Of a DNA stretch of 64,000 bases, positions 14,368-57,600 are shown piece after piece. Within the stretch, counting starts at the first letter, position 1. The number at the start of each line of letters is the position of its first letter. This stretch comes from Macrostomum lignano (taxonomy: Eukaryota), in assembly GCA_002269645.1 (NCBI GenBank), contig NIVC01003966.1:3351-67350 (forward strand). Reading direction: 5' to 3'. The translations under genes were made by a program, and so were the position numbers. The notes below the pieces were generated by a model. It worked only from the letters and a program-made list of their open reading frames with translations. It was not told the origin of the DNA and ran no database searches.

Positions 14368-14377
14368 CAGTTTGCAG

Positions 14378-23589: not shown

Positions 23590-24260
23590 CAGGTAAGTCG
23601 CAAAAAGGATCAGGTAAGTCGCAAAAGGGTTAGGTAAGTCGCAAAAAGGATTAGGTAAGTCGCAAAAAGGATTAGGTAAGTCGCAAAAAGGATTAGGTAA
23701 GTCACAAAGGGTTAGGTAAGTCGCAAAAGGGTTAGGTAAGTCGCAAAAGGGTTAGGTAAGTCGCAAAAGGATCAGCTAAGTCGCAAAAAGGATTAGGTAA
23801 GTCGCAAAAAGGATTAGGTAAGTCACAAAGGGTTAGGTAAGTCGCAAAAGGATTAAGTAAGTCGCAAAAAGGATTAAGTAAGTCGCAAAAAGGATTAGGT
23901 AAGTCACAAAGGGTTAGGTAAGTCGCAAAAAGGATTAGGTAAGTCGCAAAAAGGATTAAGTAAGTCGCAAAAGGGTTAAGTAAGTCGCAAAAGGATCAGC
24001 TAAGTCGAAAAAAGGATTAAGTAAGTCGCAAAAAGGATTAGGTAAGTCGCAAAAAGGATTAGGTAAGTCACAAAGGGTTAGGTAAGTCGCAAAAGGATTA
24101 AGTAAGTCGCAAAAAGGATTAAGTAAGTCGCAAAAAGGATTAGGTAAGTCGTAAAAGGGTTAGGTAAGTCGCAAAAGGATTATGTAAGTTGCAAAAAGGA
24201 TTAAGTAAGTCGCAAAAAGGATTAGGTAAGTCGCAAAAAGAAGCAACTAAGTCGCAATAA
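23590..24260. repeat. 20-22-bp tandem array inside the hAT element
   Basis: Unit TTAGGTAAGTCGCAAAAAGGA, about 30 copies. Confidence 0.93.
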
Positions 24261-24415
24261 GAGGGAAGTAAGTCACAATTAGAGGCAATCAGGGGGTAGT
24301 AGGTGCAAGTGTGGCAGGAGAGCAAAAGCAGAATAGAAGCCTTCAACCACAGACAAGATCTTTGAAATCAGAAGCCCGCGTCAACAGTTTCCCATTGATT
24401 TCCTAAACTCTGGAG

Positions 24416-29756: not shown

Positions 29757-30099
29757 GGTCACCGCCCTGATGTCCCTGCGGAAGGAAGAACAGGGGACAG
29801 CCGTGCGGGATAGCTTGCAGCGTGGTGCGTTAGTCCGCCTTTCCCTGTGCTTACATGTCACCCAGATTAGCAAATTATTGACTTCTTGTTATTCCTATTC
29901 ATTATTTTATTGCCACTGTTATCTCTTTTTCTTTGTTTCTTTAATGGACCAGACACTTGTAGATGTATAAATATAACAGCTTCTTCTCTGAAAGAAATCA
30001 GTAATAAGTTTAATGCAAATAGTGATATCAATATCTTTTTTAATTTTCGTTTATTTTATTATTGCAATTGCAGCTCATAGGTAAGATTTCTTATGAAGA

Positions 30100-30720
30100 C
30101 TTGTGATTTGTGTTGGTAAATCTTGTGAATTTGTGTTAAATATTGTGAATGAGTCTGAATCTTGTGAATGGGACCTAAATCTTGTGAATAAGTCCTAAAT
30201 CTTGTGAAGAACTAGTCGGAAATCTTGTGAATGGGTCTTTAATAGTTTGAATGAGTCTTAAATTCTCTGAATAGGTCTTAAATCTTGTGAATGTGTCTTA
30301 AATTTTGTGATTGGGTCTTCAATCTTGTGAATGTGTATTAAATCTTGTGAAGAACTAGTCTGAAATCTTGTGAATGTGTATTAAATCTTGTGAAGAACTA
30401 GTCTGAAATATTGTGAATGTGTATTAAATCTTGTGAAGAACTAGTCTGAAATCTTGTGAAGGTGTATTAAATCTTGTGAAGAACTAGTCTGAAATCTTGT
30501 GAATCTGTTTTAAATCTTGTGAATGGGTCCTAAATCTTGTGAATGAGCCTTAAATTTTGTGAATGTGTCCCAAGTTTTCTAAATTAGTTTTATTAAAACT
30601 TGTGAATGAGTCGTGAATATTGTGAAGGAGTCTTGAATCTAATCAATGAATCTTAATGAGACTTAATGAGACAAAATTTGTGACATTGATCTCGTGAATA
30701 GGCCTTAAATCTTGTGACTA
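30100..30720. repeat. Degenerate ~21-bp tandem array upstream of FBXO21
   Basis: Core AAATCTTGTGAA recurs many times. Confidence 0.85.
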
Positions 30721-33800: not shown

Positions 33801-36800
33801 CAAATCCCCATTATAATCCTCAGACAAATCCCCATTATAATCCTCATCCAAATCCCCATTATAATCCTCATCCAAATCCCCATTGTAATCCTCATCTAAT
33901 TCCCCATTATAATCCTCATCCAAATCCCCATTGTAATCCTCATCTAATTCCCCATTATAATCCTCATCCAAATCTTCACCCAAATCCCAATTTTAATCCT
34001 CACCCAAATCCCTATTTTAATCCTCATCCAAATCCCCATATAATCCTCATCCAAATCCCCATTATAATCCTCATCCAAATCCTTATTATAATCATCATCC
34101 AAATCCCCATTATAATCCTCATCCAAATCCCCATTATAATCCTCATCCAAATCCCCATTATAATCCTCATCCAAATCCCCATTATAATCCTCAGACAAAT
34201 CCCCATTATAATCTTCACCCAAATCCCCATTTTAATCCTCACCCAAATCCCCATTTTAATCCTCATCCAAATTCCCATCATAATCCTCACCCCCAGAGAT
34301 CCCATCCCCCAGAGATTGCATTCCACACAGAGATCCATCCCCAGAGATCCCATCCCCAGAGATCCCATCCCCAGAGATCCCATCCCCCAGAGATTGCATT
34401 CCAAACAGAGATCCCATCCCCAGAGATCCCATCTCCCAGAGATTGCATTCCACACAGAGATCCATCTCCAGAGATTCCATCCCCCAGAGATCCCATCTCC
34501 CAGAGATTGCATTCCACACAGAGATCCCATCCCCAGAGATCCCATCCCCCAGAAATTCCATCCCCCCAGAGATCCCATCCCCCTAGAGATCGCATCCCCC
34601 TAGAGATCGCATCCCCCATAGATTGAGATCCCATCCCCCAGAGATCCCATCTCCAGAGATCCCACCCCCAGAGATCCCATCCCCCATAGATCCCATCCCC
34701 CAGAGATCCCATCCCCCAGAGATTCAATCCCCCATAGATCCCACCCCCCATAGATCGCATCCCCCATAGATTGAGATCCCATCCCCCATAGATCGCATCC
34801 CCCATAGATTGAGATCCCATCCCCCAAAGATCCCATCCCCCAGAGATCCCATCCCCCAGAGATTGCATTCCAAACAGAGATCCCATCCCCAGAGATTCCA
34901 TACCCCAGAGATCCCATCCCCCAGAGATTGCATTCCACACAGAGATCCCATCCCCAGAGATTCCATACCCCAGAGATCCCATCCCCCAGAAATTCCATCC
35001 CCCAGAGATCCCATCCCCCAGAGGTCCCATCCCCCAGAGATTCAATTCCCATGGAGATCCCATCCGCCAGAGATCCCACGATCCCACTGAAATGGAACCC
35101 GCAGCCGGCTGCTGGAATCATTCGGGGTGCACCGCGCACACACTGGCCGCATGACTCTGCGCCGCATGACTCTGAACCTGCTCATCGGAGTGCCCAACGA
35201 GCATCGCGACCTGCTGGCGCGCCGCGGGCCGCGCGGACTGGACTATAACGAGCTGCACAGCCTGCTGGTGTTGCTGTTTCCCGACGAGGAGGGCGTGCTT
35301 AACTTGGATCGGCACACACAGCACCTGCGGCAGCCCAGCATGGGACAGGTAGTTCACACTGTATATAGTTTGCTGTCTGCCACTCTTGTGGCACCTGACT
35401 TTCACTCGTCTGTCACTCTTCCTAACATCTGATTTTGATTCGCCTGTCACTCTATCTGACATCTGACTTTCACTCGCCTGTCACTCTTTCTGACATCTGA
35501 ATTTCACTCGCCTGTCACTCCTGTGGCAACTAACTTTCACTCGCCTGTCACTCTATCTGACATCTGACTTTCACTCGCCTGTCACTCTATCTGACATCTG
35601 ACTTTCACTCGCCTGGCAATCTTTCTGACATCTGACTTTCACTCGCCTGGCACTCTTCTGACATCTGACTTTCACTCGCCTGTCGGTCCTCATGATATCC
35701 AGGCGCAGCTGCTGGCCATAGACTATACGTACACCGCCCAGCTGCGCCAGTTCTGCTCCGTCACCGCCCAGACGTCGGCAGCCTCGGCGGCGGCTCTGCC
35801 AGGATACTCGACCGTCCTGCAGCGCATCGCCGAAGCCTGCGACGCGGCCAAGTCGGAGGCCAGGCGACGAACTCGGCCAGTTGGAGAGGCCGACAATTCC
35901 GCTGACTCTGCCGCCGCCTCGGCTACGTCGGCGGCTAAGCAGCAGCCGGTGCACCCTGTCGGCGCTGTGTTCCGGCATCGCAGATTCGGCTACACTGGCG
36001 TAGTCAGGGGCTGGGACCCCACCTGTCTGGCCACCGAGGAGTGGATCCGCACCATGGGGGTGGACCGGCTGCCCAGGGGCCGCGACCAGCCCTTCTATCG
36101 GGTGCTGGTTGAGGACGGCAGCGAGCGGTGAGGGACTGAGCTTGAGAGGGAAAGATTAGAGGGGAGATAAGATGAAATTAGACGAGAGATTACATTAGGT
36201 GAGATAAAAGATGAGATTATATGAGATGAGAGATAAGATAATATTAGATGAGAGATAAGATCACATTAGATAAGAGATTACATTAGATGAGATAAGAGAT
36301 AAGATTATATGAGATGAGAGATGAGGTGAGGTTAGATGAGAGAAGATTAGATGAGATGAGAGATAAGATAATATTAGATAAGAGATAAGATCACATTAGA
36401 TAAGAGATTACATTAGATGAGATAAGAGATTAGATTAGATGAGATGAGATGAGAGATTAGATTAGATGAGATTAGATGAGATGAGAGATACGTTTATATA
36501 ATCGATTAGATGAGAGATGAGATTAGGTAAGAGATAGGATTACAGGAGAGATGATAAGATGAGCGATTAGAATAGATAAGAGAGTAAATTAGTTAAAAGA
36601 TGAGATTGGATAAGAAGACAGAGATTCCAGGTCAGATAAAATCTAAAATTGAGACTACAGTGTATTCGGAGTACAAAGATAAGGTGGAAGTCAGTGCTTA
36701 ATTAGGGGCCAGATAACAATATAAAAATGAGAATATATAGGAAATAGCCAATATGAGTAATGAAAATTGGTAAGTATAGAAATTAGTAAAAATATAAGAT

Positions 36801-37372
36801 TTAATTAAACAAAGAACAGATAGGACACTTTTTTAAGACATTGAATTAGATGTTAGACAACAACGCAAAGGATACCAGAACCAAAAAAAGTCGGATTGCG
36901 TGTTCCCACCTCACATTCCCCACCTCACATTCCCCACCTCACATTCCCCACCTCACATTCCCCACCTCAAATTCCCCACCTCACGTTCCCCACCTCACAT
37001 TCCCCGCCTCACATTCCCCACCTCACATTCCCCACCTCAAATTCCCCACCCCACGTTCCCCACCTCACATTCCCCACCTCACGTTCCCCACCTCACATTC
37101 CCCACCTCACATTCCCCACCTCACATTCCCCACCCTGCAGCTACGTGGCCGAAGAGAACATCGACCTGATGCAGGACTCGCCAATCCACCGGTTCAGCGC
37201 CGTCACTCATCCCGAAGTTGGGAAATTTTTTATTCGCCGTCACCAGCTCGACTGTGTCTATCTGCTGCACTCTGCCCTGGCTGATCGGTATCCGCAGGAC
37301 TCTGAACTGCTGCAGTGTATTGTTAATGAGCGGTTGGCTCAGGCTGATGCTGATGTTGCCATGCAAGAGTGA
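30865..37372 (+). CDS. FBXO21: F-box only protein 21 homolog (F-box, Transglut_core2, YccV-like domain), 6 exons
   Basis: Exons 30865-31518, 32581-32705, 33245-33607, 35105-35348, 35703-36127, 37141-37372 with consistent phases. F-box LLDLPSLALGQVLLRL; NSFIDRVLFTGTGLPI..LAARLG..VNVPDHF; VGAVFRHRRFGYTGVVRGWD..QPFYRVLVEDGSERYVAEENI..HPEVGKFF..YPQD. This domain order defines FBXO21. Confidence 0.92.
31598..32452. repeat. 34-bp minisatellite with an internal 14-bp palindrome, FBXO21 intron 1
   Basis: Unit GGTCCCTCTATGACCTAGGTCATCCTGAATTATT; ATGACCTAGGTCAT is self-complementary. Confidence 0.94.
32722..33040. mobile_element. hAT-Charlie-like MITE with GA-rich core, FBXO21 intron 2
   Basis: Left CTGGGGTCGGCCGACTTT..AAGGGCCAGA, right AGTTTGCCCAGCCCTG; no intact 8-bp TSD; related to the element at 24416. 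Confidence 0.5.
33622..35080. repeat. Two abutting C-rich minisatellites in FBXO21 intron 3
   Basis: 24-bp ATAATCCTCATCCAAATCCCCATT (33622-34285), then ~16-17-bp CCCCCAGAGATCCCATC variants (34290-35080). Confidence 0.94.
35395..35685. repeat. 34-bp minisatellite, FBXO21 intron 4
   Basis: Unit CTGACTTTCACTCGCCTGTCACTCTATCTGACAT. Confidence 0.92.
36140..37133. repeat. GA-rich degenerate repeat plus 15-bp C-rich array, FBXO21 intron 5
   Basis: GAGATAAGAT/ATTAGAT repeats at 36140-36600; CCCCACCTCACATTC array at 36903-37133 running into the acceptor CCCTGCAG. Confidence 0.92.
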
Positions 37373-37890
37373 CGAGATGTAGATCTGGAGTGACGAGATG
37401 TGTAGATCTGGAGTGACGAGATGTGTAGAACTGGAGTGACGAGATGTGTAGATCTGAAGTGACGAGATGTGTAGATCTGGAGTGACGAGATGTGTAGAAC
37501 TGGAGTGACGAGATGTGTAGATCTGAAGTGACGAGATGTGTAGATCTGAAGTGACGAGATATGTAGAACTGAAGTGACGAGATGTGTAGATCTGAAGTGA
37601 CGAGATGTGTAGAACTGAAGTGACGAGATGTGTAGATCTGAAGTGACGAGATGTGTAGATCTGAAGTGATGAGATGTGTAGAACTGGAGTGACGAGATGT
37701 GTAGATCTGAAGTGACGAGATGTGTAGATCTGAAGTGACGAGATATGTAGAACTGAAGTGACGAGATGTGTAGATCTGAAGTGACGAGATGTGTAGAACT
37801 GAAGTGACGAGATGTGTAGATCTGAAGTGACGAGATGTGTAGAACTGGAGTGACGAGATGTAGATCTGGAGTGACGAGATACACTAGTAG
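37367..37890. repeat. 23-bp minisatellite starting at the FBXO21 stop codon
   Basis: Unit GAGTGACGAGATGTGTAGATCTG (or GAAGTGACG..); the first GAGTGA is the terminal Glu-stop. Confidence 0.93.
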
Positions 37891-38813
37891 ATCTAGAGTG
37901 ACCAGAATCCAGATATGGAGCTGGAGTGAATAGATTGACTAGAGTGACTAAATGGAGCTGGAGTGACCAGATGTGGAGCCGGCAACTTGAACTCATACAA
38001 CACTCATATAGAGCTGTAACTCACTGTGAATTAGTTTTCTCAGCTAAAGTTTTTCCATCAAATAGTTTTTGCCACTAAACCCATCAATTATGAGTTGGTG
38101 TGTTTTATCGGGCTCAAGTCATTGCAATATTCATATCCGTGTAATCTAAACTTCGCTAAACTTAGCTGCAAATATTCATTCAATGCCCATATCTGTGAAT
38201 GTATGATTAAACTAGAATATATTGTCATTAAAGATTTTAACCTTTTCATTCAAGTGCAAATTTAAGCCTTTTGTCACTTAGAGAAATTGTTTTTTTTCTT
38301 ATTCAAGTAGGACAGATTCCCAGATTCCATAAAGTTCCAATTTGAATTTGTGTACCTACATGTATTTAATAAGCATAAAATCAGTGAGTAAGTATTCATC
38401 TTAAGCAGATGATGTGTAAGTTTTTAATAGCTGAAATTCTACAAATACCACTAAAATTAGTAAGGCTTGCGTTTTCCCAAAGAATTGATTCGGGAACTCT
38501 AAGGATGCATGATCAAAAAGCAGCAAAGTTCTGGTCTCACCGAGTTATTTGCATTTATTCTCTGGAAAAATCTGGTCAATTTTGTATCTGAGGGCAACTG
38601 GGTCTGAGTGTATTATGGGTCGTTGAAATGCTGGTTTATGTACATTCATATCGGTACTTATACCCATTGTGAAAGAGTGGTTGAGGGTTTGTGCCACACA
38701 AATTTATAATCAAGTTTGAATTTGTTTACAAAGCGTCATTTACCCCCTCGTAAAACAAATTCTTAGCGCATTAATTAAAATTACGATCATTAATTAACTG
38801 GTGCTGTCGATAA

Positions 38814-40758
38814 TTAATCATTTCGGACCACCAGGTACTTCAGGTCAAAGCCGAGATCTTCAGTCGAGGTCTCCTTGTCCCAGCCTCGAACTGGGATCTT
38901 AATCCTGGCGACTGGCCTCACTGGAAGTTTGTAGGCTCGGGGATATTGGCACCAACGAATCAACAGGAACTTCAGTCACCAACACATCAACAAGAACTTC
39001 TTCAGTCACCAACACATCAACAAGAACTTCTCCAGTCAGCAACACATCAACAAGAACTTCTTCAGTCAGCAACACATCAAGAAGAACTTCTTCAGTCAGC
39101 AACACATCAACAAGAACTTCTTCAGTCACCAACACATCAACAAGAACTTCTTCAGTCACCAATACATCAACAAGAACTTCTTCAGTCAGCAACACATCAA
39201 CAAGAACTTCTTCAGTCACCAACACATCAACAAGAACTTCTTCAGTCACCAATACATCAACAAGAACTTCTTCAGTCAGCAACACATCAACAAGAACTTC
39301 TTCAGTCACCAACACATCAACAAGAACTTCTTCAGTCACCAACACATAAAAAAAACTTCTTCAGTCACCAAAACATCAACAAGAACTTCTTCAGTCACCA
39401 ACACATCAACAAGAATTTCTTCAGTCACCATCTCATATGCAAGGAAACTGAAGTAGAAAGACGCAACACTCGAAACCTATGGTAAATGTTTTGAAGGCAA
39501 CTTTTCGCCGAAAAATACACTACTGAGATAGAAAGTTTTAATTTTTTCAGCACAAAAATTGCTATTGCTCTTGATAAGAGGCAGATCCAGTGTTCATCTT
39601 TTGATATGTTGTGCCTTTCTTATTGCTCTATCGATATTCATAAATCTTTTCGTTCGGAAATAGTTTTAAAGGCAGGTTTCACCGGAAAAATACACTACGG
39701 AGATAGGAAATTTCACGATTTTCAACACTAAAACAGTGATTGGGTCTCTTAACAGTGTCAGAGAAAGTCCTAATCACACTATTTTGTGCCTCACATGCTG
39801 CTCTAACGACGCATTAATCGATTTTTCATGTTAAATTGTGTCTGTCACTTGAAAAAAACTTTTAAAATAATGACAAGAACAACACTGGATCTGCCTCCTA
39901 TCAAAAGCAATAACAATTTTTGTGCTGAAAAAATGAAAACCTCCTATCTCTGTAGTGTATTTTTCGGCGAAAAGTTCCCTTCAAAACATTTACCATAGAT
40001 TTCGAGTGTAGCTTCCTATATATATGTTACTTGAGTAGTCCTTGCTCATATGCTACTCTTTCACCAACCATAAGGCTGTATCATGAGCGCCTCTTCGATG
40101 AGTTTGGCCCTGACCAGCTCGGTGTACAACACCTTGATGCTGCCCCGGCGGCAGCTCCAGTCCTGCAGGAGGCTTCGCGAGAACGACAGGCCGTGACGTT
40201 CGAACTGGCGAAACTGCGACCTCTCGTAGCCGAGAGCTCGGGCTGGTTGGGGGTGTTGGAGTTTTTGTTTGGCATTTTCATGGTGTCGGTAAATTGCCTA
40301 TTTTCACGGGTAGATATTTACATAGGGTAGAGTGCAGCGGAGAGCTTAGAGGACGGATTCTTTAATGGGGGAGATGGATAAGTACATGTAGATGGGGGTA
40401 GATGGATAAGTAGATGGGTAGATAGATAAGTAGATGGAGTAGATGAATGAGTAGATGGGTACATGGATGAGTAGATGAGGTATATGATTAGTAATACAAT
40501 AGTTAGAGTAGATGGATGTGTAGATAGAAAGAGGAAGTAGATAAAATAGATGGATTTTATGTACATAGGTGTAAATAGATGCATAAAAAGGTACACTTTA
40601 GTCCAGCAAGAACTTATCTACTCACAAAGTTTGTCCTTTTTATCCTCGAAATCCAAGGATTTGCACAGTTTGTTCATCAGATTCAGCGGTATCTCGTGAA
40701 TCTGCTCCGGGTAGGGGTTGCCATACAGGCTCATGTTCCGATAGGTTTCTGTCGACAT
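38814..40758 (-). CDS. Death-domain-only protein, about 137 aa (IRAK/Pelle/Tube/MyD88-type DD), 3 coding exons
   Basis: Exons 40758-40626 (donor GTGAGT), 40242-40069 and 38920-38814 join in phase 1/1 to give MSTETYRNMSLYGNPYPEQIHEIPLNLMNKLCKSLDFEDKKDKLSRALGYERSQFRQFERHGLSFSRSLLQDWSCRRGSIKVLYTELVRAKLIEEALMIQPYVRPVARIKIPVRGWDKETSTEDLGFDLKYLVVRND*. LGY..QF..F and LL.DW..R..L...L are typical death-domain helices. The start codon and last exon are less certain. Confidence 0.72.
38965..39430. repeat. 30-bp minisatellite in the last intron of the death-domain gene
   Basis: Unit AGAACTTCTTCAGTCACCAACACATCAACA. Confidence 0.93.
39456..40016. mobile_element. MITE with ~140-bp imperfect terminal inverted repeats
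   Basis: ACACTCGAAACCTATGGTAAATGTTTTGAAGG..TTTTCGCCGAAAAATACACTAC..GAGGCAGATCCAGTGTT at the left is mirrored in reverse complement at 39875-40016; TA at both outer edges; superfamily unclear. Confidence 0.8.
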
Positions 40759-41920
40759 AACCGTCTTGGCTGTCTTGCCAATTAACCAGCAGTAGAAAAA
40801 GTGAGCTAGATTATTTTGGTTGGTATTCTCTTGTACTCTGGAAGCCTTCAAGCTTTCTGCCGCTTAAAACCCGCGTGCACGCGTTAAATACGGTAGAACT
40901 CGTAAAATACCGCAAGGCATTAATTGAACTCGGGGTGTGTCAGCCTCTCTGCCCTGTTTGTAGCTTCCTACCACAGCAACAGAGAGCTGTTTTAATGCTG
41001 GGTTTTTATTCTTCCATTTTTGCTGGTTTTAGTTTGACGTGTCGAGAGCGCGGCTTATGCCAAGGGGTTGGTCAGTGCGACACGCCAAATTGTTTGCGCT
41101 CGCTTACCCTTCTCTTGCCTGCGTCTGTTTGTGTGCCTCTGCACTACTGCATTGGTTTAATTGGATTTAACCCCAAGCTGAAATGTTCTCAACAGTTTTC
41201 GTCTCCAACAATTCGTTGATTCCTTCACCTTGCACTGCACTACAGAGCCTTACAAATTAATAAAGCAGCTCTCGTACTTCAAATATTGACGTCATAAGCG
41301 TCAACAATGTAGTATTATTAGGGCATAGTTTAAGGGGTTAGCTACTGTAGATTAGCTTTTACGCTACTGTTAGTAGCTTTTTGTTTCAGAAGTGTCAGTA
41401 GATCAGGTAGTTTAGTTAAGACGTTGTGGGATTTCCTATAACTAAAGAGCAGTTGAAGCATCTGTCGGGGTCGTTTAAGAAAATTGAACGGAGTTGGCAT
41501 AATAGAATGCTAGCTAGGTTGCACAAGAGGAATCTTGCCTCAAATAAACGGGAGTAGCAGCCCAAGGCACAGGATCTAGGAAATCAGGTGTAAAGAAATC
41601 AATTGATTAATACAGTTATTGTGATACTCGTAAACTCAGAACAACTCTATTTGACATCCAGCCTTCATTCTTTAGTGTATAATCTTGCGTAATAGAATTA
41701 ATGACCAGCCAAGGGGCTTTGGTAGCAGTAAACTACCAATCTCAAACCAACTTTCTTCTAAGAGTGTTAATGCGGTGCGGTCACCCACGGTAATAATAAA
41801 AACGGCCTAGAAAATGATGTGTATGAATATAGTTATTGCACAAATTGTGTACGCTTCTTCAAAGCTTATATTTCAGCATCCGTTGGAAGAAGTATACTCG
41901 TATAAATAGTACGTTAGTAT

Positions 41921-43190
41921 GAACCTAAATTTTCTAGCTAATTGTCTTTTATAAAAATAATTGCCCTTTAAAGCAGCCTTCTCAGCATTAAAGTCTCCAC
42001 CTGTAAGAACTCACTTCTCCCATCGCTTAGTAGAGCGTCTAGTCAATGGCTTCAGAACAGCATTGCCTTGAAAAGACCATGGGAGTGACTGCGCAGGAAA
42101 TTGTCTTCCAAATGACCTGTGCTGGCACAAATTCCCCCTCTCAAATGTTTTTCAACTGTGGTAAAGTAAAGACATCATTTTGCACGAAATCACAAGAATA
42201 ATATGCGAGATTGAATTTATTAGAAAGCAAAAATACGCCACTTCAAAATGACATGAAATTTGCGATAGCAGCTACGAGCTGCTTTCGTTTTTGCTCCGAG
42301 TTAAAAGTGTCAGAACTTTTTGGATTACAGGTACATTCACCCAATGCTTAGGTCCTCTATTTTGCGGAATTTTCTATTGACATTTAATCTCCTACGACGT
42401 ATATGACCTGCAGGTTGTCTTCTACTGCTGTCAACCATGCCTTGTTCACAAATACAACACTTGAAAACGACAAGAAGCTAGGGCGTCGAGATAACGGTAG
42501 TTGTAGTTGTTTTAAACGATAGAAGCACAGGCATAAGGATCAAGTCTCGTTACACTTTGAACCGTCAAACTCTGATATACTCGTATAATTATGTTGCATG
42601 ACAATCTTGACAACCGCCTGTCACAACGCTGCTCCCAGGCGATCATTGCTTCTAAGTTTTCAATAGGTCGAATTCGCTAGTGAGCAAATGTCCACATCAA
42701 AACGGGACAAACAGACATTTTTAGACAAAACGTAAGGACAACTACGAGTACATGGACAATTTTTGTGGACTAATTTTGTCTATGTGTAAATCCAAATTAC
42801 CGGCTATGCGTTCTCTAGAAAAATTGAAATGTCGAGATTTGCAAAACGTTTCGAGCTGGTTTACTTCACAGTCGTGTAGTTAAGGCTGCAGGCATCCATA
42901 CGGTATACCGACTTGGTTTTGCACCCCGGACTCTGAAGCCCAACGGATTGCAACATTGCCATTGTCGTGGCGATGTTGCTGACAATCTTTCTGACTGAAG
43001 TTTCAAATTATAATCTGTTCTACAGATAGCAAATGTGTTGTACAGAAAAGCAAAAAACAACAATAATTAAGTAACCCTATACTAAGCTCTTCGTGAAGTT
43101 CACCGTCTGTATGAAGCTATTTTTAGCAACACAAGCTCAATTCGGTAAACCGAAGTTCTTCGATATATTGACATTGACGAACTTCGTGTA
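41921..43190. repeat. Left copy of a 1,270-bp direct repeat flanking the LINE
   Basis: Matches 48053-49322 at a constant offset of 6132; the only mismatch I found is 42040 T versus 48172 C. Confidence 0.96.
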
Positions 43191-43279
43191 CTTACTTACT
43201 TACTACTGACGGGGGGCGCAGGCGCCGCGAATAGGCCGCGAGGCCCCTATCGCAACCCCAAGGTAAAAGAGCACAAGGA

Positions 43280-46200
43280 TTAGCCTTGGGGGTGCGCCCA
43301 GTCCCCGCCAGTAGTCGGCAGGTCCGCAGTGGAGGCATCGGCGACCCTCATCCGGCCGGAGTCCCGGACGAAGGCGCGGAGGTCTCGGATATTGTCCGCG
43401 GTGGTCAGCTCGTCCATCCGCTGGGGGTGGCCGAGGTATTTGTGCCGCGCCTTGTTGAAGTAAGGGCAGAAGGTGACGTGATGCTCCGCGGTCTCCTCTC
43501 CTATGCCACAGAAGGGGCAGGTGGGAGGGCAACCGGTTTGCAACGATATATGTCTCTGGAAGAATCCGTGGCCGGTTAGGACCATGCACATCTCCCTGAG
43601 GTCGGTTCTGTTAAGCGAAATCAGATAATCAGAGACTTTCCTGTTCAGGTTAGGCATGGCAGAGCGGCTCTGCCTGTACTCGGTGCAGCTGTTCCAGTGG
43701 AGCTGGTGCTGCTGATGGAGCCACCTGTTGATATGGCGGGTGACTTGCGACCTGGGGGTGGGTAGCCTCATCAGACGGTGGTTGCCGTCTGGGTTGCTGC
43801 CCTCCTTGGCGAGAGAGTCTGCGAGCTCGTTGCCCAGGATGTTGCTGTGACCAGGTGTCCAGATAATTCTAATCCTGTTAAGGACTGAGAGAGATTGCAC
43901 ACTGCGGTGGCATTGAGATACTGTAGCAGCGGAGATATTCTCAGTGGTTAAGGCCTTAATAGCAGCTTGGCTATCAGTGTAGAAATTAATGTCAAAATTA
44001 TTAATGTTCGCCTGAAACAGTTGCTGGGCACACTGCTCGATGGCGCAAATTTCAGCTTGGAAAACTGAGGTGTTCTCACCGAGGTGCAGACTTTCCTGGA
44101 GAAGCATCTTACCCTCGTGGAAAATGGCAATACCCGCTCCAGCGCGGCCGTTGAACAGCGAGCCGTCGGTGAAGCAGTGAATGCCCTGGCTGCGCCGGTT
44201 CACACCGACATCCAGCGGAATGTTGTCTCGGCCAGGGATGGCGGTCTTGAAGCCCCTCCTGATGTTGAGGGCGGGAGGTCGACTATCCACATTGCCCAGG
44301 TCCATGTGGATGTTGTTAAGGTCGCGGCGGACAAAGTCCATATGCGGGATTAATGTTTTCATTGGCATAAAGCCAGAGGGCGCGTTATTTAACGTTTTAT
44401 CTCTGATAAGCCGGGAGGCAGACTTCATAGCCTCCGCCCTAATAAATAGGTGAAGCGGAGGTAGGTTAAGGATAGTGTTCAGCCCCTCGTAAGGGGTGGA
44501 CGGGTACGCACCTGTGATGGCACGGCAAATGCTGCCCTGAAGCTGGTACAGCCGCTGACGGGCGGCCTTCTGCTCCAGCACGCTAGTCCAGATGAGACTC
44601 GCGTATGTGATACTGGGCCGGATGATGCCGGTATAAATCCAACGGACCGTTCTAGGCGAGAGGCCCCAAGTCGGCCCGATGGCTCTGCGCAGCTGGGCAA
44701 AGCAGCGTTTTGCCCGACCGATGACGTTATCAAGGTGCTTCGTCCAGCGCAGGTCATGCGTTAGCGTCACACCGAGGTATTTGACCTCCTTCTTGAAGGG
44801 GATGTTTCTGCCATAGACAGTGAGGTTTTTCATCTCCCACTTACGGCGCTTGGTGAAAACGACAGCGACAGTCTTAGTGACGCTGATTTTTAGGCCATGC
44901 TGTGTAGCCCAGTCGGCCGCCTTGTCGGCGAATTGCTGCATCAGGTTGCGCAGAGTGGCGGGGTCGGGTCCGCTGACGACCGCGGCAACGTCATCGGCGT
45001 AGCCCGCCCTGGTGATACTGCTGGGAATGTCAGCGGTTAGAAGTTCGTCCATGACGAGATTCCAGAGAAGTGGAGTTAGCACGCCACCTTGCGGGCCGCC
45101 TTTCATCACCGCCCGGGTGAGGGTAACGCCCATAAGTGTGGATGTCACAAACCTTTTGCGGATCATAAAATAAATCCAGCGAACAATGCTGTGTCTTACA
45201 TTCCTGCGGGAAAGAGAATTTCTGAAGGAGCGGAAGAGGACATTGTCAAATGCTCCTTCGAAGTCAACGAACAACCCGCAAGCGAGTTGTTTGCTAAGGA
45301 TGGCACTCTCAATTTTGGAGGTAATGGCGTGGAGAGCATGCTCAGTCGTCCTCCCAGACTGGAAGGCGTACTGGTACTTACTGACAGGGTCGGAGCGCAG
45401 GTCGCACTCTCGAAGCCTCCACAGGATGAGCCTCTCCATCAGCTTAACACAAAAGGAAGTGAGGCTGATGGGCCGGAAGGATTTCACGTTGGTGTAGTCA
45501 CCCTTAGCAGGTTTCGGGATGAACACGACTCTGGACATTCTCCAGATTGTGGGAATGTAACCTGTGGTATAACAGTCAACAAGCAATTTAGAGAAAGAAT
45601 CAGCAAAGTTTTGCAGCTTTAGCGCCTCCTGCAGGATACAGGGGGCGATATTGTCAGGGCCAGACGATTTATACGGTTTAAAAGAATTTGCTGCCAGCTG
45701 GAGTAGCTGGGGGGTGGCGCACTGCTGGAAAAGCTTGTGATCACAAGGCCTGTGGTCATCGACCACGTACTCCGGTTCGTCAACCTGCGGAAAGCAGGTG
45801 GAGAAAAGAAGATTTAGCGAACCTTCGCACTGGTAGTGTAGTTACCATCCAGGTGCAGAAGGGAGTTACACTGAGCTAGCGTGTCGTGCCTGAGAGTCCT
45901 GACCAGCCGGGCTGTGGGGTGTTGCCCTTCCAGGCCGGCGCAGTAGGCTTTCCAGGTGGTCTTCTTAGCCCTTCGGATAGTACTTTTGTACATCCTCAGA
46001 GCAGAGTGGTAGTTCTCCCAGTCCTCTGGAGTATTCGAGCCGTTTGCGAGGCGTTGCAGTCGGCGGGTGTTTTTCTTCATGCGAGTGAGCTCTTGACTCC
46101 ACCAAGGAGAGTATTTCTTCCTGCAAAACAGCTTAGGGGCGTTAGCGCGTATGGCGGTGTTTAGGATCTCAACGATGGAGTTGCACCGATGCTCAATGCC

Positions 46201-47095
46201 AGGGAGATCCTCGCTGGAGTCCGGTAAGTTGGCTTCGGTCAGGAGTTTTAGCAGGTCTCTTCGAAAACCTGTCCAGTCGGCCTTTTTCAAATTAAGGCGG
46301 TCCCGGTTCTCATGACGGGCTCCGACGGAGCTGATGCTGTACTGAATGTACGAGTGGTCGGAAAGCGATGGGAGGTCATCCCTAACCAGCCAGCTGTGGA
46401 CCTGATTGAGGGCGTTGTTGGAGACGAGAGTGAGGTCGATAACCTCACGCCGATTAGAGACAATAAATGTGGGTTTGCTGCCTCTGTTGCAAATGTGTAA
46501 CGAGGAGGAGTTAATGAAATCAATTAGTAAGTCACCGCGCCTGTTAGTATCGCTACTAGACCAGGCAGTGTTGTGGGCGTTAGCATCGCAGCTAACGATA
46601 AGCTTCCGATCCTGGAGATTACAGAAGTCCGCCAGCTCCTGCAGGAGGGGGGGAGGGACGTCTTCCTGGATGTCCAGGTAAGCGGAAACGAAGGTCAAGT
46701 CAAAGACTGAGAAAGTACACATGTCTTTAGAGCAAAACATTGGCATAATAGTGGCCGGGAGGTCGTTTTTGACGAGGGCGATAGCCTGGGGGTGTCGTTC
46801 GCGCAGAGGTACAGAACCTGATAGCCTGGCGGCAGGCAGGTCGGCTTCCCCTTGCGGGTATACGGTTCCTGAATAAGGTAGATGTCAACTTCCTTGTTGG
46901 CAAAGGTGCCTGAAAGGTTGCTCGATGCTGCAAGGGCGTGGTGCAGGTTGATCTGAATAATGTGCAGGTTAACAGGTTGGTTCGCCGGCGGCGGATTATT
47001 TATTTGGTTGCTGGTGGCAGTGTCATCATTGGGCTGGCCGTTAAGGTTCGCCCTCAGCGCCCCGCTCCTAGTTTGGCACGGGGTTGGGAACGGCA

Positions 47096-47096
<1 letters not shown>
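43280..47096 (-). CDS. LINE ORF2 (APE-RT-RNase H), split by frameshifts near 46786 and 45822
   Basis: Track ORFs 46695..47096, 45814..46746 and 43280..45766 are contiguous after restoring one base at each break; no substitution-derived stops seen. Confidence 0.9.
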
Positions 47097-48018
<922 letters not shown>

Positions 48019-48052
48019 GCAGAGTAGGCTGAAATGGAAAAACTGAAATGTA

Positions 48053-49322
48053 GAACCTAAATTTTCTAGCTAATTGTCTTTTATAAAAATAATTGCCCTT
48101 TAAAGCAGCCTTCTCAGCATTAAAGTCTCCACCTGTAAGAACTCACTTCTCCCATCGCTTAGTAGAGCGTCCAGTCAATGGCTTCAGAACAGCATTGCCT
48201 TGAAAAGACCATGGGAGTGACTGCGCAGGAAATTGTCTTCCAAATGACCTGTGCTGGCACAAATTCCCCCTCTCAAATGTTTTTCAACTGTGGTAAAGTA
48301 AAGACATCATTTTGCACGAAATCACAAGAATAATATGCGAGATTGAATTTATTAGAAAGCAAAAATACGCCACTTCAAAATGACATGAAATTTGCGATAG
48401 CAGCTACGAGCTGCTTTCGTTTTTGCTCCGAGTTAAAAGTGTCAGAACTTTTTGGATTACAGGTACATTCACCCAATGCTTAGGTCCTCTATTTTGCGGA
48501 ATTTTCTATTGACATTTAATCTCCTACGACGTATATGACCTGCAGGTTGTCTTCTACTGCTGTCAACCATGCCTTGTTCACAAATACAACACTTGAAAAC
48601 GACAAGAAGCTAGGGCGTCGAGATAACGGTAGTTGTAGTTGTTTTAAACGATAGAAGCACAGGCATAAGGATCAAGTCTCGTTACACTTTGAACCGTCAA
48701 ACTCTGATATACTCGTATAATTATGTTGCATGACAATCTTGACAACCGCCTGTCACAACGCTGCTCCCAGGCGATCATTGCTTCTAAGTTTTCAATAGGT
48801 CGAATTCGCTAGTGAGCAAATGTCCACATCAAAACGGGACAAACAGACATTTTTAGACAAAACGTAAGGACAACTACGAGTACATGGACAATTTTTGTGG
48901 ACTAATTTTGTCTATGTGTAAATCCAAATTACCGGCTATGCGTTCTCTAGAAAAATTGAAATGTCGAGATTTGCAAAACGTTTCGAGCTGGTTTACTTCA
49001 CAGTCGTGTAGTTAAGGCTGCAGGCATCCATACGGTATACCGACTTGGTTTTGCACCCCGGACTCTGAAGCCCAACGGATTGCAACATTGCCATTGTCGT
49101 GGCGATGTTGCTGACAATCTTTCTGACTGAAGTTTCAAATTATAATCTGTTCTACAGATAGCAAATGTGTTGTACAGAAAAGCAAAAAACAACAATAATT
49201 AAGTAACCCTATACTAAGCTCTTCGTGAAGTTCACCGTCTGTATGAAGCTATTTTTAGCAACACAAGCTCAATTCGGTAAACCGAAGTTCTTCGATATAT
49301 TGACATTGACGAACTTCGTGTA
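48053..49322. repeat. Right copy of the 1,270-bp direct repeat
   Basis: See 41921-43190. Confidence 0.96.
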
Positions 49323-49465: not shown

Positions 49466-52066
49466 ATGGACAGCACAACCGATACAGACGACACAACCAG
49501 CTCAGTTACTGAGATGTTCTCCAGGCCCAGTAGGCAGTACGAGTTCTTGTCGACTTCCACTGCTGCGCCGCAGGCAGCGCAACATGTGATGATCGGTGCG
49601 TGAGCAAAATTATTATCTGCTCTGATTAAAACCAATCACACCGTGATTTTGTGCTCGTTTCAGACATCAGTGACAGATACGTGGGCATGACCATCATCAT
49701 TGCCCTGCCAGTTGCCGCCTTCATTCTTCTACTGGGTGTCATTCTGCAAATTGTCTTGGTTGCTGTTGCCCTGCGCAGGGTGAGTTCTGAGGCGGGGAGA
49801 GGGGATTTAGCACGAGGGCTTTAGCACCAGTGACTTTAGCACCTGGCTTTAGCAGCAGTGGCTTTAGCACCAGGGGCTTTAGCACCAGGGGATTTAGCAC
49901 CATGGACTTTAGCACCAGGGGCTTTAGCAGCAGTGGCTTTAGCGCCAGGGGTTTTAGCACCATGGACTTTAGCACCAGGGGCTTTAGCACCATGGACTTT
50001 AGCACCAGGGGCTTTAGCACCATGGGCTTTAGCACCAGAGGCTTTAGCACCGTGGACTTTAGCACCAGGGGCTTTAGCAGCAGTGGCTTTAGCGCCAGGG
50101 GCTTTAGCACCATGGACTTTAGCACCAGGGCTTTAGCACCATGGACTTTAGCACCAGGGGCTTTAGCACCAGGGCTTTAGCACCATGGGCTTTAGCACCA
50201 GAGGCTTTAGCACCATGAACTTTAGCACCAGGGGCTTTAGCACCATGGTCTTTAGCACCAGGGGCTTTAGCAGCAGTGGCTTTAGCGCCAGGGGCTTTAG
50301 CACCATGGACTTTAGCACCATGGACTTTAGCACCAGGGGCTTTAGCACCATGGTCTTTAGCACCAGGGGCTTTAGCAGCAGTGGCTTTAGCGCCAGGGGC
50401 TTTAGCACCATGGACTTTAGCACCAGGGGCTTTAGCACCAGGGGCTTTAGCACCAGGGGCTTTAGCACCATGGGCTTTAGCAGCAGTGGCTTTAGCACCA
50501 GGGGCTTTAGCACCATGGACTTTAGCACCAGGGGCTTTAGCACCAGGGGCTTTAGCACCATGGACTTTAGCACCAGGGGCTTTAGCACCAGGGGCGCCGG
50601 CACTATTGGTTTAGTACCAAAGGCTTTAGCACCTTATTCCCATAAACAGATTACTCTAAACTACGTTGAACAATTGAGATATTGCATTTGAACACTTTCA
50701 ACAAAATTTAAGCTTGGTGTCAGACTACGAGTAGCAAATGGTAAATGAGATCTCAGCTATCATATCACATCTTTGTACCAACTAAAACGTCCCACAGAGC
50801 TCTTGAAACTGCAACTTAGCAAAGAAAGTACTCGTCATTTCCTTGAAGCTGTTAAACATTATAGAAATTAGCTATGCACCTTTTTAGCAGTGTTGAAGTT
50901 CTTTTGCTGAAATAAATAAACACGGATCTGGGTTGTAAAGTTAAGGTCAGAATCTGTTTTCCATTCAACACGCAGATCAACAGCATCGCCAGGTTGCTGT
51001 TGAAGCGGCCCGATCAGAGTTCGACTTCAGACTGGCTCACCGAGGAACCCGAAGCCAATTCCCAGGTCTCCGGTGACGTAAGCTGCACTGCGAGCTGAAT
51101 TTGCTTCAGTTTAATAATAAAATTATAGTATTTACTGAGAAACAATCAAGAAATCTCAAGACCCTGTTTGAAGTTTTTATATTTTCACCTAGGGCAAACA
51201 GGGAAATTCAAATTGAGCACTTTACCACCACCTGAGAAGTTTCCTATGAGCTCTAGACCAGCTGTTGAATTCCCTCTATGAGCACTTGAACACATGAAAA
51301 ATCCCCTATGAGTACTTGAAAATCTAAGAATTCCCTTCTGAGCACTTGTTTATCTGAGAAATCCCCTATGAGCACTCGACCATCTGAGAAATTCCCTCTG
51401 AGCATTTTAACTCCTGAGAAGTTCTCTCTTAGCATTTGACAATCTGAGTCATAAATTCCATTCGAGCACATAAACTAGCGTACATGTAATAGGCCATTCA
51501 GGTTATGAACTCAAAATCATTCAGACTGAACAAAAAAACCATTTAATTTTTTTCCAATGTTCCCTAGGCTCTAGCACCTCCGCTTCCAAGACGCCCCGTT
51601 GATCAACCTGCTGAGGTAGGAACTGGTATCAGTAAATTAAAACAAATGGAAATTTCTGAGTAGTTTGTTCACCAGCCATACAACTTTCACTGTTTTTTTC
51701 GTCTAAAGGCCTCTACTCTCGCTAAGACGCCTGGTGAAAGGTTACGAGTTTCGTTTGTTACTGATGTAAAGTCATCTTATCATCTTGAGGTTGGTTGCTA
51801 ACTTGTTTGTTATCTCGATATTAAGCAGTTTAACGATTCAAAAGTTAATGAAATTTTGTTACAGCTGACCAACCCTCAGGAACCTAGGAGATCGGAAGGA
51901 GTATCTGAGCACTTAGCGGTAATTTTTAAAAAAAATATTTTTTCTGGATTTAAATACCATTGGTATTTTAGTGAGGTCTTCAAATTGATTCTCACCTTTC
52001 ATGTTTCTTTAATTATTTCAGGTTTATGAAGAAGATACAGTATACACTGTGGCCGATGTCCCCTAA
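49466..52066 (+). CDS. Short single-pass membrane protein (Ser/Thr-rich ectodomain, TM, Pro/Tyr-motif tail), about 164 aa, 6 exons
   Basis: Exons 49466-49595, 49664-49779, 50976-51077, 51568-51615, 51865-51918, 52022-52066 join in phase: MDSTTDTDDTTSSVTEMFSRPSRQYEFLSTSTAAPQAAQHVMIDISDRYVGMTIIIALPVAAFILLLGVILQIVLVAVALRRINSIARLLLKRPDQ..APPLPRRPVDQ..AVYEEDTVYTVADVP*. The 5' end may extend via the AG at 49425-49426. Confidence 0.7.
49800..50620. repeat. 15-bp GGGGCTTTAGCACCA-family array (intronic)
   Basis: Alternating variants GGGGCTTTAGCACCA, TGGACTTTAGCACCA and GTGGCTTTAGCGCCA. Confidence 0.94.
51255..51440. repeat. Degenerate ~30-bp tandem repeat (intronic)
   Basis: AATTCCCTCTATGAGCACTTGAA-like unit, about 6 copies. 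Confidence 0.75.
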
Positions 52067-52420: not shown

Positions 52421-52801
52421 GGGAGCACGAGAAATGCCCGCAGACGAATTGCCCGCCGAGATTTGCCCGCAGTGCAATTTGCCCGCGAGTGAATTGCCCA
52501 CGAGCGAGTTGCCCGCCGAGTTTTTTCCCGCCGAGGTTTGCCCGCAATGCTTTTTTACTGCAGCGCTTGGCAGCTAGATTCTGTCTGCATTGCCTCCCCC
52601 AAAAAATATGCATTTGATATGCAGTTACTATCAAAACGTTTGATCGGTTAAATCTCTTTATTAAGACTTACTAAGCATTGGGGAGGCAATGCAGACAAAA
52701 TCTGCCGTGGCCAAAGGCACTGCAGGAAAAAAGCATTGCGGGCAAACCTCGGCGGGAAAAGCTCGGCGGGCAATTCGTCTGCGGGCAATTCTCATGGACC
52801 C
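52421..52801. mobile_element. Mutator(MULE)-like MITE (381 bp)
   Basis: TIRs GGGAGCACGAGAAATGCCCGCAGACGAATTGCCCGCCGAG versus GGGTCCATGAGAATTGCCCGCAGACGAATTGCCCGCCGAG; 9-bp TSD TGATTGAAC (52412-52420, 52802-52810); subterminal TTGCCCGC repeats. Confidence 0.85.
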
Positions 52802-52949: not shown

Positions 52950-53430
52950 TCATGGGGCTTTAGCACCAGGGGCTTTAGCACCAGGGGCTTTAGCACCAAG
53001 GGCTTTAGCAACAGGGGCTTTAGCACCAGGGGCTTTAGCATCAGGGGCGCCAGCACCAGGGGCTTTAGCAGCAGAGGCGCCAGCACCGGCGGTGCCAGCA
53101 CCAGCGGCGCCAGCACCGGCGTGCCAGCACCAGCGGCGCCAGCACCAGGGGCTTTAGCACCAGGGGCTTTAGCACCAGGGCTTTAGCACCAGGGTTTAGC
53201 ACAGGGCTTTAGCACCAGGGGCTTTAGCACCAGGGGCTTTAGCATCAGTGGCGCCAGCACCAGGGGCTTTAGCACCAGGGGCTTTAGCACCAGGGGCTTT
53301 AGCACCAGGGCTTTAGCACCAGGGGCTTTAGCATCAGGGGCGCCAGCACCAGGGGCTTTAGAACCAGGGGCGCCAGCACCAGGGCTTTAGCACCCGGCGC
53401 GCCAGCACCAGGGACGCCAGCACCAGGGGC
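52950..53430. repeat. Second GGGGCTTTAGCACCA-family array (intergenic)
   Basis: Same unit as 49800-50620 plus GGCGCCAGCACC variants. Confidence 0.92.
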
Positions 53431-53817: not shown

Positions 53818-54200
<383 letters not shown>

Positions 54201-54668: not shown

Positions 54669-57600
54669 ATGGCCTACCAGGAACGCAGTGAGTTACTCCT
54701 AAATATTTGCTCAGATATAGCAAACTTGGTTAATAATTTACCCATGATTACGAGCTATTACTTTTTCTGTCGCAGAAATAATACTTTGGGAGCTTGGCTT
54801 CGTTGCTTGTGCCTTGTTGATCTTTCTGCCAAAGTGCAGCAGTCAAACTGCCTGTGAGTTACTCATGTTTTCTGCTGATAACTAGCATTTTAAAACAAAC
54901 ATTTTTTCCGGCTTCACTTCTGTATTTTATCACTGTAGTTAATCTATTTTAGCTCTTGAAATTTGCCTTCTTAAAGTTACTTTAGCTAAGCATCACGACC
55001 AGCTAATATATGATAGTCAATCGATATTAATATTCCTTCACTAACCGGACCAACCATTCCCAAACAGACTGCAGCAGCGCGCTCCAGCGACTGTCAGCTG
55101 AGGCCGGTGGCGAAATCGCCAGCCACAGCGGAGTCGGCACAACAAACTACAGCAGCAACTCGCAGTGCTACTGGCAGCTGGATGCGCCACCTGGCAAGAG
55201 AGTCATAGTCTGGTTCACCTACATGGATCTCGAGTCGCCAAACGACAGAGTGTCTCTGTACGACGGCCTGACAACGTCATCCGAAATTGCAGTCGTTAGC
55301 GCGAATGACTCAGTTGGCTATGAGTCGCCGAGATTCGTTTCGTCCGCAAATATTCTGACAGTGAATTTTTATTCAAACAGCCAATTCGCAAGAAAAGGAT
55401 TTCGTTTAGAGTATAACGCCACCGTATCAGGTTAGTTGCCAGTGTTATCGGATTGTGAATCATTGAATCATAATATCATATAGTTGCGATTGCATGTTGA
55501 GAGGTGCATCGACGATAATATCGGTTTTGTTTTGTAAACATTGAATAAATGGCAGTCATCTTCTCGCTTAATCCAAATTTCTGCAGCTAACAGCAGCACG
55601 TGCGGACCAGTCACGTTTGATGACGCTTCCAACTCTTCCGGAATGATTGTCAGCCACCCCGGCTACGACCAACACAGTTTATGTCATGCAGCTGGACCTT
55701 GCCATCGGTGTCCGGAAAGTTTTACCAGCTCTACGTTGGCAACGTGTCTCTCGGAAATGGAGATTGCCTGTCTGTAAATCAAGGCACAGCGTCAGTGACA
55801 GGTGGCAGTTCTAATGTGAATTTGTGCGGCTGGAAAGCTGTCACTGGCATGACACTTCAGGTGGATGGCAACTTCATCATCAGGTTTAGTTCCAATGGAG
55901 CTTATGAGTCCACGGGCTTTCAAATCAAGTTTGAATTGCAAAACTGTGAGTTTTGTAATGAGATTCAATCACTAATTTGTTACTTATGTATATTTCTTGT
56001 TTGTAAACTTTTTATGGGTTTTTTATAAAAGTTTCACGTACTTTGTACTTAGTCGCTATGATTTATCGCCACCCTAGTATATGTTATGATTTGCAAGCAA
56101 AAAATGAGCTAAAAATAAGAATTTTCAGCAAGAATTCGAGTTAAAAATCGATACTTGCATGCATCGTACTCCCTCTGTAGCAACCTAAGATAAAAGAGGA
56201 ATATGCAGTACTCATGACATAGTGGAATGGTCTGTATTATTCAAACATTAAGGAGTGTTCATCACAATCCAATATTGAAGTACTTTTGAATATAAATTAT
56301 ATTTGTATAGCTTTCTTCTGCGGGCTTCATTGAATGTAAATATTTTTGTAAATTTCAGACTGCCCAGACAAACGCAACTTGACTAATAGCACAGGTGAAG
56401 TAGTAAGTCACAATGGCGTCGGAGAATACTATTATGGGAACAATGCACAGTGCGTCTGGTACATTACGGCACCGCCTGGTCAGCAGGTTTGGTTCTGGTT
56501 TTCCTATTTTAATTTAGGGTACAATGACTACGTCAGCGCTCGAAACATGGGAGAGTCTTCGAGCACAATTGCAACGCTCCGCAGGGGCCATTCGCCTTCG
56601 CCGTCGGGTTTCAATCCACAGCAAGTGTTGTAAGCGTAACATTTACTACAAGCAGCATGTACTCAGGTCTCGGATTTCGACTTCATTATAACTTTACCCA
56701 GTTATGTAAGTTTAAAGTTTTGAAAACAATTTTCTTAATATTTTTGCAACTAATCATTAACAACTGAAGCAGAAAGGCGCTACGCCCGCAAGCCAAAAAA
56801 TAATCGAGACAGCAAATCTTAAGTTTTATCGAACGAAAGTCACAAACGTCTCGTCTTCCCGGTGTTCTAGTTGCAAAAAGAGCAACAATGGGTTCTTTGA
56901 ATCAGAGCAAATTATGAACTTTGCAACAACTAACCAGGGACTACTGAATACTCCCTTCAATTAACCTCTGAAAATTAAAATACTTCTTTAAAAGAAATTA
57001 AAAGCTTTCCGTCTCGCTAACGTCGAAGTCGAAATTGGCAGAGTTTTGAAGTATATTTCTACCTTAGATGCTTTATTTATTGTATTAGTTGTTTATTTAG
57101 CCATGTACCAAATACAGTCCCCGTTGGAAGTTCTCATATATTTAAACATATTTTTTCAGACTGTTACGGATTTGAAAACGTGACAGCAACGAAAACGGGA
57201 AGTCAAATAAGGAGTCACTACGGTGTTGGTTCAAGTCCTTATTTAAACAACATGAGCTGCTACTGGCACATAAGCGTTCCTGTCGAACAGAGAATCGCCT
57301 TTCGTTTTACTTACTTCAATACACAGACAAATGATAGAGTGACAGTGTTTGATGGCTCCAACGGTTCAGCTGTTCTGCTCAATACTTCCGGCAGTAATTT
57401 TAAAGGTGTTATTGTATCCTCAGCAAACACGGCGACTGTGCGGTTTAACACAGACAGTGACTATGGAGGATATGGCTTTGCATTGTGGCTTCAAGAAATT
57501 GACAATGGTAAGCAAAGCATTAAGCACATATGACGTAAAGCATAGTAACTAAGAAACAAGAAAATGTATTTTTACCCAGTTTTCCGTCAGATAGATATAG

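Follow-up and report, generated by a model that had tools for sequence, protein, structure and literature searches.

A non-LTR retrotransposon of Macrostomum lignano lying exactly between two copies of a 1,270-bp host-like direct repeat: a candidate kilobase-scale target-site duplication

The DNA analyzed here comprises 64,000 nt of Macrostomum lignano contig NIVC01003966.1 (assembly GCA_002269645.1, positions 3,351 to 67,350 of the forward strand). This whole stretch is referred to as the window, and positions are counted from its first letter. On its minus strand, at 43191-48052, the window carries a retrotransposon without long terminal repeats (non-LTR), i.e., a long interspersed element (LINE), which is enclosed by two direct copies of a 1,270-bp sequence. 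Base-by-base comparison at an offset of 6132 aligned copy A (41921-43190) with copy B (48053-49322) with one mismatch, T at 42040 against C at 48172, and without indel differences. BLASTN of the repeat against the window returned exactly two copies at 99.92% identity, so that a previous inspection of the letters without database searches (the sequence-only reading) was correct about the extent of the repeat and its single differing base. The identity ends sharply, at 41920/48052 on one side and at 43191/49323 on the other, and no third copy was found within the window. In a whole-window self-comparison the pair was the sole long dispersed repeat of the 64 kb, the remaining repeats being short-period tandem arrays. 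A chance origin is excluded and the repeat is real.

The repeat looks like host DNA and not like a part of the element, because of its GC content, its lack of coding or RNA-gene content and the absence of a tail at its end. Its GC fraction is 0.398, which matches the outer flanks (0.38-0.47) and differs from the element (0.558), and the step in composition falls inside one 200-bp window at each repeat/element junction. The repeat holds no open reading frame (ORF) longer than 65 aa, and no Rfam family or tRNA was detected in it or anywhere in the window. The possibility that it is a multicopy gene unit hit by a site-specific LINE, such as a spliced leader RNA, small nuclear RNA, 5S or tRNA gene, was therefore rejected. 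The termini of the repeat read GAACC...GTGTA and not TG...CA, while the outer flanks, GTTAGTAT and AAACAGCT, have no short target-site duplication (TSD) in common around the whole repeat-element-repeat unit. A 13-mer, TATACTCGTATAA, occurs both just left of copy A (41893-41905) and inside the repeat (42578-42590), either by chance or as a small dispersed motif.

The insert between the copies is a complete-looking, full-length or near-full-length non-LTR retrotransposon of the apurinic/apyrimidinic endonuclease (APE) type, 4,862 bp long. The identification of a LINE with a (TAAG)n tail by the sequence-only reading is borne out by the Pfam matches to APE, reverse transcriptase (RT) and RNase H. 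Exo_endo_phos_2 (3.7e-23) was matched in 45814-46746 (-), upstream of RVT_1, which was matched over its full profile (1-205, 2e-30), and RNase_H (7.3e-13) covers residues 529-657 of an 828-aa ORF, C-terminal to RT. These three were the only domains found in the element by Pfam, with no integrase, protease, tyrosine recombinase or GIY-YIG domain. Reading along the minus strand, a 5' leader of 34 nt (48019-48052), TA-CATTTCAG-TTTTTC-CATTTCAG-CCTACTCTGC, precedes ORF1 (47096-48018, ATG at 48018). The stop codon of ORF1 (TAA, 47098-47096) overlaps the ATG of ORF2 (47096-47094) as TAATG. The proximal part of ORF2 (45814-47096) begins with this ATG and encodes the APE endonuclease, while its distal part (43280-45826) encodes RT, RNase H and a C-terminal CPFC...H...C (CCHC) motif. 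An untranslated region (3' UTR) of about 73 nt (43207-43279) and the simple-repeat tail GTAG(TAAG)3 (43191-43206) complete the element, the tail adjoining copy A directly. The tail boundary is ambiguous, as the two following target bases (TA) may be counted as tail; a ...CGTCAGTAGTAAGTAAGTAA tail is also read through by the C-terminus of P0025, the model of another copy. For the ORF1 pieces of the window element there was no Pfam match at E <= 0.01. The ORF1 proteins of two distant relatives, L003 and L005, carry the Pfam domain DUF4780.

The leader contains two occurrences of CATTTCAG, as well as CATT and TCAGT as initiator-like motifs, and is only putatively assigned as the true 5' terminus of the element. 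CATT has been described as an initiator of another non-LTR element, located at its 5' end (PMC2861651). With its APE-RT-RNase H order, its C-terminal Cys/His motif, its two ORFs with a TAATG overlap, its short simple-repeat tail and its initiator-like 5' end, the window element resembles the I-group of non-LTR retrotransposons. Members of this group (I, Nimb, Ingi, LOA and Tad type) combine ORF1 with an APE-RT-RNase H-CCHC arrangement and bear simple-repeat tails, such as the (TAA)n of the Drosophila I factor. We thus describe the element as I-group-like, a label of architecture and not of placement in a named clade.

Compared with other copies and with intact distant relatives, the window copy has three frame breaks, each corresponding to the loss of one G in a GG or GGG run. 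In ORF1, at about 47905-47909, CCGGCGG has become CCGCGG, a 1-nt deletion relative to three other copies (P0024, P0025 and P0093). In the APE part of ORF2, at about 46785-46786, AGGGCT has become AGGCT, again a 1-nt deletion by this comparison. In the APE-RT linker, at about 45826, GCGGAA has become GCGAA, and the distal frame of ORF2 joins the APE part only when one G is restored there. Such a pattern points to errors left in the long-read consensus and less to mutations that truly inactivated the copy. Since it matches the error expected of the PacBio-based assemblies of M. lignano, the copy may be intact in vivo.

Regarding the family, the closest protein matches, at 90-100% identity, are all UniRef/MetaClust gene models of M. 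lignano, in at least 14 clusters, and many of the UniRef models reach 99-100% aa identity. The family appears to be young and multicopy in this species, its multicopy status being suggested by the many near-identical UniRef gene models. None of the near-identical UniRef/MetaClust models, which come without a contig, covers the 5' leader or a flank. The nearest relatives outside Macrostomum are metagenomic/Logan sequences with 43-57% identity and the same domain order. Intact relatives align colinearly with the element. Relatives likewise bear a simple-repeat tail shortly after the ORF2 stop, (ATGA)n(GTGA)n in L001 and (TTGGAAC)3 in L003. Flanks of relatives were also searched for TSDs. Around L003 only 8-mers were shared, at a frequency as expected by chance. 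Around L004, a Joint Genome Institute (JGI) metagenome contig sequence with about 34% aa identity, a candidate 10-bp TSD, GGACTCTTCT, was found at 1036-1045 and 5550-5559. It directly follows a GTAAG-like tail, 24 nt past the ORF2 stop, and implies an element of 4.5 kb. Chance alone would produce about one 10-mer match of this kind, and the candidate is suggestive at most.

The repeat adjoins the element at both ends, as had been noticed from the letters alone. On the plus strand copy A is followed directly by CTTACTTACTTACTAC (minus strand: GTAGTAAGTAAGTAAG), and copy B is directly preceded by the 5' end of the element, with the ORF1 ATG (48018) 34 nt inside it. Read in the orientation of the element, the repeat begins directly after the tail with its first base (TACACGAAG...), while the 5' end of the element comes after the last base of the repeat (...AGGTTC). 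The outer junctions, between the left flank (L) and copy A of the repeat (R) and between copy B and the right flank (Rt), occur once each. It follows that the locus had the ancestral order L-R-Rt and now has the order L-R-E-R-Rt, where E is the element. This layout is exactly the geometry of a TSD, as from staggered breaks 1,270 nt apart. The putative first-strand nick site is 5'-CGTGTA^AAACAG-3'. An imperfect palindrome, CGAAGTTC(N20)GAACTTCG, lies at 43151-43186 and ends 4 nt before this site (TGTA^AAAC); its DNA fold z-scores are modest (-1.7 and -2.1), and no structure was found by DNA folding at the L|R boundary (z -0.2). A structural cause of the break positions was thus rejected, given only a modest hairpin by the first nick and none at the other boundary. 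Microhomology at the ...TGTA|GAACC... joint was likewise dismissed, as the native ...AGTAT|GAACC is 1 nt out of register and the joint is effectively blunt.

We consider it fairly probable that the locus records a real insertion-coupled duplication of 1.27 kb of target DNA during target-primed integration. The hallmarks of target-primed reverse transcription (TPRT) are all present, with the tail joined straight to the target, and the young age of the family agrees with one difference in 1,270 bp. According to this reading, a nick would have opened the plus strand after ...CGTGTA and before AAACAG... (43190 | 49323, as adjoining before the insertion). From the 3'-OH of this nick, synthesis of cDNA would have started on the (UAAG)n tail, where TA may have given a 2-nt pairing. 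The second strand would not have been joined a few bases away. Its priming 3' end would have lain at what is now the L|R boundary, 1,270 nt downstream, where second-strand synthesis on the cDNA would have been primed from minus-strand ...AGGTTC^ATAC.... The 1,270 bp between the break points would thereby have been copied to both sides of the element. Two sub-mechanisms can be envisaged. The second-strand nick, or a pre-existing nick or fork, may have lain 1.27 kb away on the same duplex and been followed by fill-in. Alternatively, a normally staggered break may have been formed, with the reciprocal 3' end first being extended by about 1.27 kb on another template and then joining the cDNA; this template could be a sister chromatid or a homologous or homeologous copy, in a process resembling break-induced replication (BIR) or synthesis-dependent strand annealing (SDSA). 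Both would give the same product and are indistinguishable on the present sequence. The T/C difference could be a later mutation, a base copied from the other template in the case of templated extension, or a consensus error.

Several observations weigh against this reading. While the anatomy, the exact abutment and the host-like repeat can be read directly from the window, it is the order of events, the nick positions and the presence of both copies on one molecule that we infer. The M. lignano assemblies are PacBio-based and redundant and the genome is partly duplicated (PMC5730564), which calls for caution over the placement on one molecule. The ...GGTTC|TACA... joint shows no microhomology to the native L|R context. 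The only pointer to a TSD length among relatives is the 10-bp candidate of L004, which could be a chance match. Finally, TGTA is present at both 43187-43190 and 48049-48052, as the sequence-only reading had stated, so that the element-sense TACA at the 5' end of the element equals the first four bases of the repeat after the tail. This 4-nt identity is not predicted by a simple giant TSD and has to be ascribed to the 5' end of the element, to extra nucleotides (TA + CATT...) or to target preference. As one of three models, next to a giant TSD and an assembly join of two haplotypes, the sequence-only reading had proposed that a normal insertion with a 4-bp TSD, followed by a switch to the empty homologue, accounts for TGTA. 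In its simple form this does not hold, as a 4-nt-staggered end extended on the homologue puts TACA beside Rt and not beside the element. The explanations that remain are that TACA, or the CA of the CATT initiator with two extra nucleotides, is part of the element or its RNA, that the family favours TACA targets, or that TACA stems from a canonical insertion with a 4-bp TSD at the joint of a prior R-R tandem duplication.

The last of these explanations would make the duplication older than the insertion. A pre-existing R-R tandem with the joint ...CGTGTA|GAACC... would have received the LINE at that joint with a canonical 4-bp TSD (TGTA), and in this model alone TGTA is expected at either end of the element without an extra assumption, in a genome that is very rich in tandem repeats. 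We nevertheless rate its probability as low, because the insertion must strike a single site among about 2,540, with a positional coincidence of roughly 1/1270, and this in a duplication that has gathered one substitution at most. Such a duplication would have to be extremely young, with at most one difference in 1,270 bp, while the tandem arrays of the window have periods of 4-130 bp and not of kilobases. A weak point is that the nick context would be TGTA^GAAC, compared with the more A-rich TGTA^AAAC in the case of a single-copy target. A different origin is offered by unequal crossing-over in vivo between two independent insertions of the family, in the same orientation and one at each end of R, carried by different homologues or homeologues. 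Crossing-over inside the element would yield R-E-R together with a reciprocal deletion of R, and the geometry of this product fits; moreover, the family is young and abundant and extra homologous copies exist in the genome. However, two full-length insertions in the same orientation would be needed within 1.27 kb, and the sequence after ...GGTTC is TACA..., which differs from the native ATAC... and is contrary to a short TSD of the second insertion, so that we regard this origin as highly improbable. That R belongs to a mobile unit, either as an LTR-like or pseudo-LTR sequence or as the 3' UTR in a head-to-tail arrangement of a 5'-truncated and a full copy, is scarcely credible. The unit does look superficially LTR-like, with a 4.9-kb coding core between repeats and a total length of 7.4 kb. 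It carries none of the integrase, protease, tyrosine recombinase or GIY-YIG domains, it ends in GAACC...GTGTA with no short TSD around it, and it shows the sharp GC break (0.40 vs 0.56). The tail lies about 75 nt past the ORF2 stop, as in relatives, while R itself ends without a tail. The LTR, pseudo-LTR and tandem-copy variants were accordingly ruled out by composition, by the absence of a tail at the end of R and by the absent enzymes. An orphan 3'-transduction was discarded too, as it would leave a tail between R and the 5' end of the element, where there is none.

A further possibility concerns the assembly rather than the genome, namely that two haplotypes or homeologous copies were joined, or that the region was mis-scaffolded or gap-filled, while real molecules each contain one R. 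The assemblies of the DV1 line derive from PacBio continuous long reads (CLR) and include duplicated blocks of non-repetitive sequence, amounting to 180 Mb, that are >=95% identical (PMC5730564). They also reflect aneuploidy of the large chromosome and a genome of which more than half is repetitive (PMC5730564). In addition, the three single-G losses in the element are typical of residual assembly error, meaning that the sequence is not error-free, and the lone T/C substitution could be an allelic SNP (single-nucleotide polymorphism). On the other hand, R-E-R is not what an overlap-layout assembler makes out of one filled and one empty allele. For this, the 5' end of the element has to be joined to the start of R in some read, and this needs either another insertion at a distance of 1,270 bp or an improbable chimera. 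Such a chimera would have to stop exactly at the terminus of the element, without Ns and without a single base of Rt, and the two repeat copies show no indel differences. An artefact is thus unlikely, although it has to be taken seriously next to a real insertion-coupled duplication.

LINE TSDs usually range from a few to about 20 bp. Much longer ones are known: the TSD of the non-LTR retrotransposon R9 is 126 bp. R9 and the window case are alike in that integration duplicates target DNA far beyond the usual range, but R9 uses a restriction-like endonuclease and forms its long TSD at every insertion in a fixed ribosomal DNA (rDNA) site, whereas the window shows a single event of ten times that length, located outside genes and made by an APE-type element. 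The title of the work cited for R9, which is rDNA-specific in bdelloid rotifers, calls the target site duplication 'exceptionally long'. Closer in scale is human L1. In experimental expression and in tumour genomes, small (1-10 kb) tandem duplications have been observed at L1 insertions and called 'large TSDs'. [quoted passage not shown] In the L1 large TSDs, as in the window, a TPRT-type insert with its tail at one junction lies exactly between kilobase-scale direct copies of the target. As causes, it has been proposed that the second break lay far away or that the reciprocal end was extended, by BIR or on the sister chromatid. The two elements belong to different clades: L1 lacks RNase H and ends in poly(A), while RNase H and a (TAAG)n tail are present in the window element. 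The L1 cases come from somatic, tumour or cultured cells and were seen in validated reads, whereas the window case is a full-length insert, presumably in the germline, known from an invertebrate assembly. LTR retrotransposons and the pseudo-LTRs of Penelope-like elements also have long direct repeats around an RT-coding core; in contrast to them, the repeats of the window are host DNA by composition, and TG...CA termini, an outer TSD and an integrase or GIY-YIG domain are all absent.

The window case would thus seem to be a further instance of the already described L1-type large-TSD outcome, and no new mechanism is proposed. The novelty claimed in the sequence-only reading was overstated, as human L1 is already known to give kilobase 'large TSDs' and tandem duplications bridged by the inserted L1. 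Should both copies lie on a single molecule, the locus would be a clean, base-resolved LINE target duplication of more than 1 kb, in a non-mammalian and presumably germline setting, with a full-length element. The L1 'large TSD' outcome would then extend to an RNase H-bearing invertebrate LINE, and such events could persist as small segmental duplications with an LTR-like look. LTR-like structures of this kind can mislead the annotation of transposable elements, and later recombination could delete the element and leave a solo copy. The value of the locus would be that of a natural data point on the failure of the second half of TPRT. It is very unlikely, in our opinion, that kilobase-scale target duplication is recurrent for this LINE family or host and not a one-off. 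Recurrence might arise from loose or delayed second-strand cleavage, or from routine templating by extra homologous chromosome copies. In such a case, insertions would regularly create LTR-like direct repeats and duplicate flanking germline DNA, and TACA would be the mark of a preferred target or a 5'-joining motif.

The surroundings of the repeat are dominated by tandem arrays. Near the repeat, minisatellites with a 30-bp unit at 38970-39430 and with a 15-bp unit at 49800-50595 and again at 52954-53430 were detected, and the ORFs adjoining the repeat lie in these 15-bp and 30-bp arrays, with only sub-threshold low-complexity Pfam matches. The repeat had been taken for the intergenic/promoter region between two divergent genes, a view that was not sustained, the flanks being minisatellite arrays without domain matches; the adjacent ORFs were rejected as the two divergent genes on these grounds. 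The 15-bp minisatellite (GGGGCTTTAGCACCA) comprises about 53 units at 49800-50595 and about 32 at 52954-53430, roughly 80% alike, and its arrays, which may or may not be coding, can be read through in several frames of either strand (GFSTR / GAKAP-like peptides). Between these two arrays sits a foldback-like structure of nested inverted repeats (52421-52801), with arms of 38-50 nt that are 82-95% complementary and derive from GCCCGC-containing 15/30-bp units. To the right, the nearest domain-supported coding sequence begins at about 56.4 kb, where CUB-domain ORFs within 55541-59720 (+), with matches up to 2.7e-13, are probably exons of a multi-CUB gene. The other nearest coding sequence with domain support is an ATG-initiated ORF of 219 aa at 30865-31524 (+), whose F-box-like match (5e-05) is just under the Pfam cut-off.

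Further minisatellite arrays are located at 932-1887, 2428-3337, 3677-4464, 5482-6531, 6972-7828, 8367-8758, 10057-10740, 13064-13557, 13934-14368, 23540-24278, 30094-30717, 31585-32452, 33621-34292, 36152-36637, 37367-37978, 38950-39437, and 60945-61943. Simple and tandem repeats have been put at about 15% in M. lignano, and the dense packing of the window with arrays agrees with this published value. A long and pure (TTAG)n microsatellite of about 90 units (94% matches) lies at 53819-54172; its class differs both from the (TAAG)n tail of the element and from the complement of that tail. Left of copy A, an inverted repeat at 39460-39605 / 39870-40015 has arms of 146 nt with 90% complementarity, separated by 264 nt, and resembles a miniature inverted-repeat transposable element (MITE) or foldback element, with a partial further copy at 39656-39742.

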